DNA of 63,313 bases, the filler included, from Olpidium bornovanus S191 (taxonomy: Eukaryota; Fungi; Olpidiomycota), in the NCBI GenBank assembly GCA_017911155.1. It is 28 parts of 28 records of this genome, joined end to end, with 100 filler letters (N's around TTAATTAATTAA, not from the genome) between each part and the next. Parts side by side here need not be neighbours in the genome. Positions count along the whole stretch, not along the records: positions 45,532 to 47,455 come from JAEFCI010003598.1; 27 more parts are not named here. One strand, given 5' to 3'. Of the stretch, positions 45,532-47,455 are shown piece after piece (position 1 is the stretch's first letter; each line of letters opens with the position of its first letter). Made by a program: the position numbers and the translations under genes. The notes beneath the pieces were generated by a model. The model was not told where the DNA came from and did no database searches. It was given only the letters and a program-made list of their open reading frames with translations.

Positions 45532-47455
45532 CAGCTTCTCGTCCGGACTGCTTGCCACCGCTTTCTTGGCGGCGGCCACCACGTCGTTGTAGCTTTGTCC
45601 CAGCGACGCCGCAGCTTTCTCGGGAGGCACGTCCGGCTTTCGGGACAGCATGGCCGCAACAATGTCGCCGTGCTTGCTCGATGTTGAGCAGATCTCGCTG
45701 ACAGCTTGGGAAAACGCTGATTCCGATCCTGCGGTCCCCGTCGCGGCCTGCTGTCCGCCCAGATCAAAACTGTACAGTTCCTGCTCGATTCCTTTAATGA
45801 CCTTGTTATACTCCCCGGCCGCTTCTACAGCCCCCTCAAACGTAGTCTGCAGTTTTTCGACCGCCGCCTGCACGAACTCCCGAGACCGGTCAATCTCGCC
45901 ATGAACCACATTTTGCGCGTTTTCCGGACGTCCTCCTTCGGCGCCGCCGGCTCCCGCGCTGCGGCAAGCCTGCAAGAAGACGAGGGCGGCCTCACCGAGA
46001 TCTCTGGAATCCTCGAGGATCTTCGCGCCCAGCTTACGGTCCGCGTTTACTCTGACCATGTCGACGGCGGCCCCGATGGCCTGTTCGAAATTGGTCGCCA
46101 TCTGGCCGACCGGCGACCCTATCGAGGAAGCTTCGACCTTCGCCGCTCGAAACACCGTGTCGGCCGTCAAAATAAAGTCCCTGAGCTTGCCGAGCAGCAG
46201 CTCGCGGCAGCCTTCCTCGCTCATGCTGCCCGGCTCAAGCGTGCCCGCGTGGAGCTTCACGGCGACGCTGTCGGCCTGCGCGACGTTCTGCGAAATCCTC
46301 TCTATCGCGTCGTCGCATTCCCGTTGTCCAGGCGCAGAAGCGAGCATGGATTCAACCAGGCTCCTGAGCGAGTCTCCGATCGACTTCGCTTGAGCGGCGA
46401 GGAGCGCCTGGTACTGCGGAGACCTGGGGTTGGAGCACATGGAGCGCAAGGTGCCCACGAGGTCCCGGCCGGTCACCAGGCTGCTCCGGGATTCTTCGAC
46501 CAACTGCTGCTGGAGGACCTGCGTCGCCGCGGTGACCGCGGAGGGCTTCGGCGCAAACTCCGGCGAGGCCGAGAACATCACCAGGGCCTGGACGGCTCCC
46601 AGGAGCGGGGCGGCGGCGGCGGCGCATTTTTCCTTGGATTCCGGCCCGGGCTGAGTTGCCAGCGTTTTGATGCTGGCGACGAGGCCGGCCGTGGCCATCG
46701 CCAGCTGTTTTCCGAAATCGGCGAACTGCTTCTGGGCCCCCGGGGTGAGCGCGGAAAGGTTCCCGTACTCCTTGCAGGAGGCGCAGAGGACGGAGGTTTG
46801 CTTGGCAATAATGGACGCCTGCGCGAGCACCTGCTGCTGCGTCAGCTGGCTCGGGCCGGTCAGCTGTTCGCACGCCTCCCGCAGGTCGTTGCTGGCCCGC
46901 CCATTCTTTTCTTGATCCACCACCCCGGGAACCGCCGCTACGGTCTGGGGGTCGGCCAGCCCGATGAGGAACGCGGCGCGGACGGTGCGGTCCGCCACTT
47001 TCTGCAGCGCTTCTGCTATCTGCGTCATGAAACCGCACAGCTTGGCGACGTCCGCCGACCTCGCGGCCGACGGCGTCGCCTGCAGGATCGCGTTGACGGC
47101 GGCGGCGGACTCGTTGACGTCGGCCACGCAGTTCGCATATCCCAAGCTGAGCGTCGACGGGTCGTTGACGGCGTCCAGCTTGGCCTCGGCGAGAGCCAAA
47201 GCGCGGGTCGCGGCGTTCGCTTCTCCTTGGCCGGGCGCTGCGGCAGAGCACGTCTGCAAAAGCTGTTCTAGAGCGTCTCCCACGTGTTTGGAGGACTGCG
47301 CCAGCTGGTGCTTCAAGTTCGGCGCGTTCGGGTCCATGCCGACCGCTTTCACGGCAGACAAAAGCTTGCACCCGTTCAGGCCGACCTCCCTGACGTGAGA
47401 AACCACGGTTTCTCGCGCGGTCACATCGGTGTGGTGTCCTAGCACGGCGTTGGCG
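45532..47455 (-). CDS. Talin, central rod domain fragment (whole contig is one open frame)
   Basis: DPNAPNLKHQLA..AAAPGQGEAN..AAFLIGLADPQ..QQVLAQASIIAKQTSVLCASC..KQFADFGKQLAMAT..CAAAAAPLLGAVQAL..ASPEF..SMLASAPGQRECDDAI tracks the talin rod as I recall it (DPAAPNLKSQLA..APGQKECD..AAYLVGVSDP..QVLSAATIVAKHTSALC..KAPGQLECETAI). Confidence 0.92.

Follow-up and report, generated by a model that had tools for sequence, protein, structure and literature searches.

Talin links adhesion receptors in the membrane to actin. It is known in Chytridiomycota, Blastocladiomycota and Neocallimastigomycota; Dikarya are not known to have it, and its presence in integrin-less zoosporic fungi has reportedly been in the literature since 2010. 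Zoosporic fungi have been reported to lack integrins, FAK and Src and to keep talin, vinculin, paxillin and alpha-actinin, and in Orpinomyces talin transcript levels shift with zoospore formation and germination (PMC5042518). A role in zoospore crawling has been suggested for the talin of chytrids (bioRxiv 10.1101/2020.06.12.142943), and that of Dictyostelium bears force without integrins, through the receptor SibA (PMC12686525). Earlier papers have thus described talin in zoosporic fungi that have no integrins (PMC5042518; bioRxiv 10.1101/2020.06.12.142943). The first-pass annotation of the locus described here had pointed to the same occurrence, and this part stands, as published (PMC5042518); the novelty was overstated, an integrin-independent mechanism having been shown in Dictyostelium (PMC12686525). 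Among the papers searched, none names Olpidium together with talin.

The contig encodes the middle of a talin rod

Within the window, by which we mean the whole stretch of 63,313 nucleotides that was analysed, positions 45532-47455 correspond to the entire contig JAEFCI010003598.1 (1924 bp, GC 0.645) of the Olpidium bornovanus S191 assembly GCA_017911155.1. A single minus-strand frame (45532-47454) runs through 641 codons with zero stops and, across 1.9 kb, no introns, and has a third-position GC (GC3) of 0.79. It covers approximately residues 1285-1910 of talin-1, both termini being truncated by the contig edges. An exact look-up of the full 641-aa frame gave no match, and the contig record was reached through the public gene call for this locus. 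That call, the unnamed protein P0001 (328 aa, window 46353-47336, L001:119-1102), covers residues 40-367 only; it thus spans 328 of the 641 open codons, indicating that the talin is under-annotated in the collection. Other frames of the contig also contain long ORFs, the longest being of 456, 339, 144 and 111 aa, and two of them, the 456-aa ORF at 45901-47271 (plus strand) and the 339-aa ORF at 46352-47371 (minus strand), overlap the talin frame. A Pfam scan of the ORFs in these other frames matched no family, and an antisense ORF was rejected as a reading. The overlapping long ORFs are most likely by-products of high GC.

The first-pass annotation had claimed that about 640 residues of this frame are collinear with the central talin rod, that two APGQ.E linkers are present, and that the protein is a true talin rod distinct from the I/LWEQ domain of Sla2/HIP1R. 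These points were borne out. When compared with all PDB chains by HMMER, the fragment gave one collinear match, query 13-636 aligning with residues 1297-1907 of human talin-1 (6r9t, E 1.7e-68). Sub-matches were obtained with the R7R8R9 triple module (5ic0, query 72-547, E 2e-53), R7R8 (2x0c), R9 (2kbb, 4f7g_B) and the end of R6 (2l10). Two talin-specific Pfam profiles scored far above their cut-off of 27 bits, Talin_IBS2B at 98 bits (residues 179-298) and TLN1-like_RS at 92 bits (residues 376-547), so that HMMER and Pfam together place collinear talin-specific rod bundles from R6 to R10 on the fragment. The linkers APGQGE (residues 73-78) and APGQRE (residues 374-379) were both found, and their P-G columns are conserved across all aligned talins. 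By contrast, the I_LWEQ profile reached 16.4 bits, below its cut-off of 27.5, on a stretch that fits talin R6 better, and the I/LWEQ domain of Sla2/HIP1R was rejected for this reason. These data confirm that the contig encodes the middle of a genuine talin rod.

Residues could be assigned to bundles along the whole frame, all features lying on the minus strand. The last two helices of R6 occupy residues 1-71 (47242..47454), with PDB 2l10 matching query 12-71 and helices modelled at 11-40 and 45-70. The APGQGE linker between R6 and R7 (47221..47238), recognized by its motif and by the conserved P-G, lies at the start of the first three helices of R7 (residues 72-170, 46945..47241), which are supported by PDB matches, the structural model and Foldseek. 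Inserted into R7 is the four-helix bundle R8 (residues 171-307, 46534..46944, including its two short beta linker strands), which contains the Talin_IBS2B match and is also seen in the model. R7 then resumes with its last two helices (residues 308-373, 46336..46533; PDB matches, model). The APGQRE linker between R7 and R9 (46318..46335), identified by motif and talin alignment, opens the five-helix bundle R9 (residues 374-543, 45826..46335), to which TLN1-like_RS and PDB 2kbb and 4f7g_B correspond. Finally, R10 is cut by the contig end after three of its five helices (residues 544-641, 45532..45825; PDB matches, model).

An AlphaFold model computed from a 47-row alignment had a mean pLDDT of 89.4 and a pTM of 0.75. 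It displays 20 helices, which follow the order 2 (R6 end), 3 (R7), 4 (R8, inserted), 2 (R7), 5 (R9) and 3 (R10 start), with short paired strands at 172-175 and 303-306, at the point where R8 is inserted into R7. The predicted model and Foldseek thus both show R8 inserted into R7 through a two-strand linker. The top Foldseek match was the talin R7R8R9 crystal structure 5ic1 (E 2e-23, TM 0.75 by target); R7R8R9 crystal structures ranked first, full-length talin next and R7R8 complexes third, with E values of 1e-14 to 2e-23 for the R7R8 and R7R8R9 crystal structures. Alpha-catenin and vinculin reached just E 1e-4 and a TM of about 0.1, and these families were rejected. Hence talin is the best match by HMMER, Pfam and Foldseek alike, and the possibility that profile searches would favour another helical-bundle family, which the first-pass annotation had named as a refutation, did not materialize.

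Residues with assigned roles in animal talin were located in an alignment of the fragment with eight other talins (nine sequences in total), among which was a 2541-aa bird talin-1; the mapping was calibrated on nine mouse talin residues, 9/9 of which lie one position earlier in the bird protein. Mouse K1530 and K1544, the lysines of the LD-motif site in R8, align with K249 (46708-46710) and K263 (46666-46668), and both are identical in 9/9 aligned talins. D1676 and E1770, on the face of R9 to which the F3 subdomain of the head binds when talin is autoinhibited, align with D395 (46270-46272) and E488 (45991-45993), so that acidic residues are retained in the fragment. By alignment, the fragment therefore has both the lysines of the LD-motif site and the acidic residues of the F3-binding face. 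G1404 and W1630 of mouse talin-1 are KANK-site residues in R7. The position aligned with G1404 is N121 (47092-47094) and that aligned with W1630 is Q349 (46408-46410); among the fungal talins aligned, the glycine occurs in Blyttiomyces only and the tryptophan in none. Variation in R7 beside invariant R8 lysines would fit a scenario in which KANK binding is an addition on the animal side.

Relatives, full length and selection

Searched exhaustively with HMMER, 1.8 billion representative proteins yielded 332 matches, and all of the best ones are talins. Besides the gene's own fragment, the closest representatives share 34-38% identity with it. The best named matches are the chytrid talins of Phlyctochytrium, Blyttiomyces, Quaeritorhiza and Nowakowskiella, followed by those of Paraphysoderma, Zopfochytrium, Caulochytrium, Cladochytrium, Gonapodya, Batrachochytrium, Fonticula, Corallochytrium and many animals. 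Atlas searches retrieved talin families only, and a metagenome scan retrieved only distant relatives (25-29% identity).

One search cluster contained the only close relative found, P0152, a protein of 2517 aa from the Logan assembly of SRR27165748 (L003:211-7764). P0152 aligns with all 641 residues of the fragment at 53% identity and with small gaps only. By Pfam it is a complete talin, with F0, FERM_M, an IRS-type F3, Talin_middle, VBS2, R4, IBS2B, TLN1-like_RS and I_LWEQ (residues 2365-2513). It is the sister of the fragment in every tree (100/100). Its coding GC is 0.56 vs 0.645 in the fragment, and the divergence is too great for the two to come from the same species; P0152 may be a further representative of this deep lineage.

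Neither a FERM head (F0-F3) nor a C-terminal I/LWEQ (THATCH) domain is on this contig. Recovery of these two regions, which the first-pass annotation had proposed, succeeded only in the sister: P0152 carries both, whereas searches with its head and rod gave no further O. bornovanus piece and two head candidates from other records. A word search with the P0152 rod was swamped by vertebrate talins. In run X2, which is only guessed to be RNA, a single contig of 8374 nt at depth 59 covers the whole piece with one mismatch and zero gaps. Beyond the piece, it has 4145 nt towards the N terminus and 2305 nt towards the C terminus, where a talin the size of P0152 needs approximately 3801 nt and 1842 nt, respectively; judging from these lengths, the contig would fit a complete mRNA or an intronless gene.

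Near-identical sequence, defined by 74-100% of sampled 31-mers, was found in nine runs, one with organism label A (the probable source) and eight with label B, from two studies. Smaller shares of 31-mers were detected in more label B runs and in runs of two further labels, as well as in root metatranscriptomes and a soil metagenome. The nearly unchanged recurrence in runs of one other label from several studies and in root and soil metagenomes is as expected of a root parasite. Strain variants were examined in X11, a soil DNA run, and X14, a root metatranscriptome prepared as a cDNA library; most of their aligned pieces are 90-99% identical to the frame, with no indels. Of 97 variants, 40 are listed; among these, 21 synonymous and 9 non-synonymous changes occur in X11, and 19 synonymous and 7 non-synonymous changes in X14, a synonymous share of 70-73%. 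Set against the 484 synonymous and 1439 non-synonymous sites of the frame, these listed variants (40 of 97) give a pN/pS of approximately 0.13. The low pN/pS and the zero indels indicate that the frame is a gene under purifying selection. The talin sequence is also present in the X14 RNA library, a type of library that can carry DNA.

With the head and the tail absent from this contig, the fragment might come not from a full talin but from a protein that consists of a rod alone, as TLNRD1 does, or from another helical-bundle family such as vinculin or alpha-catenin. TLNRD1 does have the R7R8-type fold of the fragment (6xz4; HMMER E 1e-10, Foldseek E 9e-11). We nevertheless consider this very unlikely. 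The match to TLNRD1, a two-bundle, stand-alone R7R8 protein of approximately 360 aa, is confined to R7R8 (query 144-343) at 17% identity, whereas the fragment continues collinearly and in-frame into R6, R9 and R10; in addition, the sister P0152 is a complete talin, the 8374-nt contig has suitable room on both sides, and the vinculin and catenin matches are marginal. A decaying pseudogene, in a lineage that is losing its adhesome, would likewise account for finding only a fragment and for a public gene call that covers about half of the codons. However, 641 codons without a stop or a frameshift, strain variants that are mostly synonymous and free of indels, the retention of the functional lysines and acidic residues, and the presence of the sequence in a cDNA library led us to reject it as scarcely credible. 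An intact talin gene is the reading that we retain.

Origin and phylogenetic position

The O. bornovanus S191 genome was obtained from DNA of non-axenic zoospores that cucumber roots had released (Chang et al. 2021, PMC7865070). Tetranucleotide binning, for which fungal-like transcripts served as anchors, cut the raw assembly from 187 Mb to 29 Mb, after which contigs with a non-fungal best match were discarded (PMC7865070). Because the assembly was binned from non-axenic zoospore material, contamination is a real question here.

A tree of the rod region was built from 37 rows and 630 columns under LG+C20, with labelled talin rods of apusomonads, breviates, nucleariids, aphelids and rozellids absent from it. 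The fragment and P0152 are joined at 100/100, and this pair falls outside the clades of Metazoa and Holozoa (each 100/100). In the best tree the pair lies outside the clade of chytrids and Gonapodya (96/95). A branch supported at 99/92 sets the pair and 10 labelled fungi against Fonticula, its two relatives, Holozoa and Metazoa. Constraining the pair to group with Holozoa/Metazoa costs 14.9 lnL (AU test, p-AU 0.054), a borderline rejection, and constraining it with the chytrids costs 2.95 lnL (p 0.26) and is not rejected. In the full-length tree, the amoebozoan heads of Cavenderia and Planoprotostelium split from all others, the pair included, at 99. The talin phylogeny that the first-pass annotation had called for therefore sets the fragment on the fungal side of the 99/92 branch, outside Metazoa and Holozoa. 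The backbone of the tree is weak, and the AU tests leave the exact place of the pair unsettled. The protein is an opisthokont-type talin, neither animal nor amoebozoan, that forms its own deep lineage on the fungal side of Fonticula; this position is compatible with Olpidiomycota, and is not proof of it.

Several other talins were noted. P0002 (L002:34-3972; third-position GC 0.95) and P0186 group with Fonticula alba (98/89), and L009 (10001-11617), from the metagenome scan, is an intron-bearing talin contig of GC 0.70 whose translated segments resemble P0002 by eye, not the query. These three probably come from uncultured nucleariid-like organisms. P0019, P0037, P0058, P0082 and P0427 form a well-supported talin clade (98/96) beside Paraphysoderma and the chytrids, P0058 and P0082 being flagged for unusual amino-acid composition.

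What these trees leave to be weighed is whether a real talin from another organism was binned with Olpidium. It could stem from a unicellular relative of fungi and animals that was co-washed from the cucumber roots, a nucleariid, apusomonad, breviate, aphelid, rozellid or member of an unsampled lineage. Such an origin would accord with a pair that sits on the backbone, inside no labelled fungal clade, with the borderline rejection of a place beside Holozoa (p-AU 0.054), and with a nearest relative that is 53% identical and differs in GC (0.56 vs 0.645). We regard it as unlikely: the assembly authors purged contigs with a non-fungal best match, the 99/92 branch separates the pair and the fungi from the Fonticula group and Holozoa, the best named matches are chytrids, and the depth of 59 in a run under another label, together with recurrence across studies and root metatranscriptomes, is easier to reconcile with an abundant root parasite than with a casual grazer. 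A metazoan or amoebozoan contaminant, which the first-pass annotation had raised as a potential refutation by phylogeny, is extremely improbable. The talins of Pecten and Branchiostoma are among the good matches, but identity to every metazoan talin is just 25-30%, the Metazoa and Holozoa clades leave the query out, the two amoebozoan talin heads stand apart from the rest of the full-length tree, and the gene runs for 1.9 kb without introns at a GC3 of 0.79. The guess of an Olpidium-like source, made in that annotation, agrees with the O. bornovanus S191 assembly as the origin of the contig and with the side that the pair takes with fungi against Fonticula and Holozoa. We conclude that the talin gene is quite probably Olpidium's own.

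Proposed function and comparison with known talins

Taken together, our results support, with a probability that we put at roughly 0.7, the view that the contig carries an inner stretch of a canonical full-length talin gene, most likely of O. bornovanus, that is intact, transcribed and under purifying selection. The identity, the fold, the conserved sites, the selection and the presence in an RNA library come from the data given above, whereas we infer that a head and tail lie on the same gene and that it is Olpidium's, as well as the receptor and the role in the cell. By analogy with known talins, an N-terminal FERM head would anchor the protein to the plasma membrane by binding the cytoplasmic tail of an adhesion receptor other than an integrin, and a C-terminal I/LWEQ domain would grip F-actin. 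The bundles encoded here would then form the force-bearing middle of the molecule, in which R8 may act as a docking site for LD-motif partners and R9 may fold back onto the head and keep talin off. If the organism lacks integrins, as reported for zoosporic fungi, a canonical integrin is impossible as the partner receptor. The precedents of zoosporic fungi, chytrids and Dictyostelium favour a coupling of membrane to actin that is independent of integrins. Such a talin would likely be used in wall-less stages, during zoospore attachment, encystment on roots and in the young thallus, as opposed to integrin-based matrix adhesion.

The value of the finding is phylogenetic, in that it extends talin to the lineage closest to land fungi; the known distribution of fungal talin is refined, not overturned. 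If the gene is Olpidium's and land fungi lack talin, talin and the flagellum were lost on one and the same branch; the dating of talin loss to flagellum loss, which the first-pass annotation had suggested, depends on all non-flagellated fungi being without talin. An Olpidium talin would shift the latest possible point of loss in fungi to the branch that lost the flagellum and the wall-less swimming stage. It would also tie talin more firmly to wall-less motile cells and provide a concrete gene to localise in a root parasite whose zoospores carry plant viruses. We consider as evenly balanced the broader proposal that Olpidium, the closest flagellated relative of land fungi, has retained a talin that is complete, expressed and under selection and that represents a deep lineage of its own, that talin was lost on the short flagellum-loss branch, and that in this obligate root parasite the protein couples actin to an undescribed non-integrin receptor in zoospore attachment or in the naked thallus.

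Among the known systems, the talins of Chytridiomycota, Monoblepharidomycota and Blastocladiomycota have the same bundle order as the fragment and match it with E values of 1e-76 to 1e-62, although identity is just 26-31% (examples being those of Phlyctochytrium planicorne, KAJ3096387.1, Blyttiomyces helicus, RKO94095.1, Gonapodya and Paraphysoderma). Vertebrate talin-1 (6r9t, 5ic0, 2x0c, 2kbb) is collinear over R6-R10, with the same nested R7/R8 topology, and its R8 LD-motif lysines and the acidic residues of its R9 autoinhibitory face are also found in the fragment; it differs by an identity of approximately 28-30% and by having G1404 and W1630 where the fragment has N121 and Q349. TLNRD1 has the R7R8 part of this architecture, and Sla2/HIP1R has in common with talin only the C-terminal I/LWEQ, a domain that this fragment does not contain. 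Dictyostelium talin A/B offers a functional model, in which force passes between membrane and actin without heterodimeric integrins, via SibA (PMC12686525), but it belongs to a different lineage, amoebozoan talin heads being split from the query's clade at 99.
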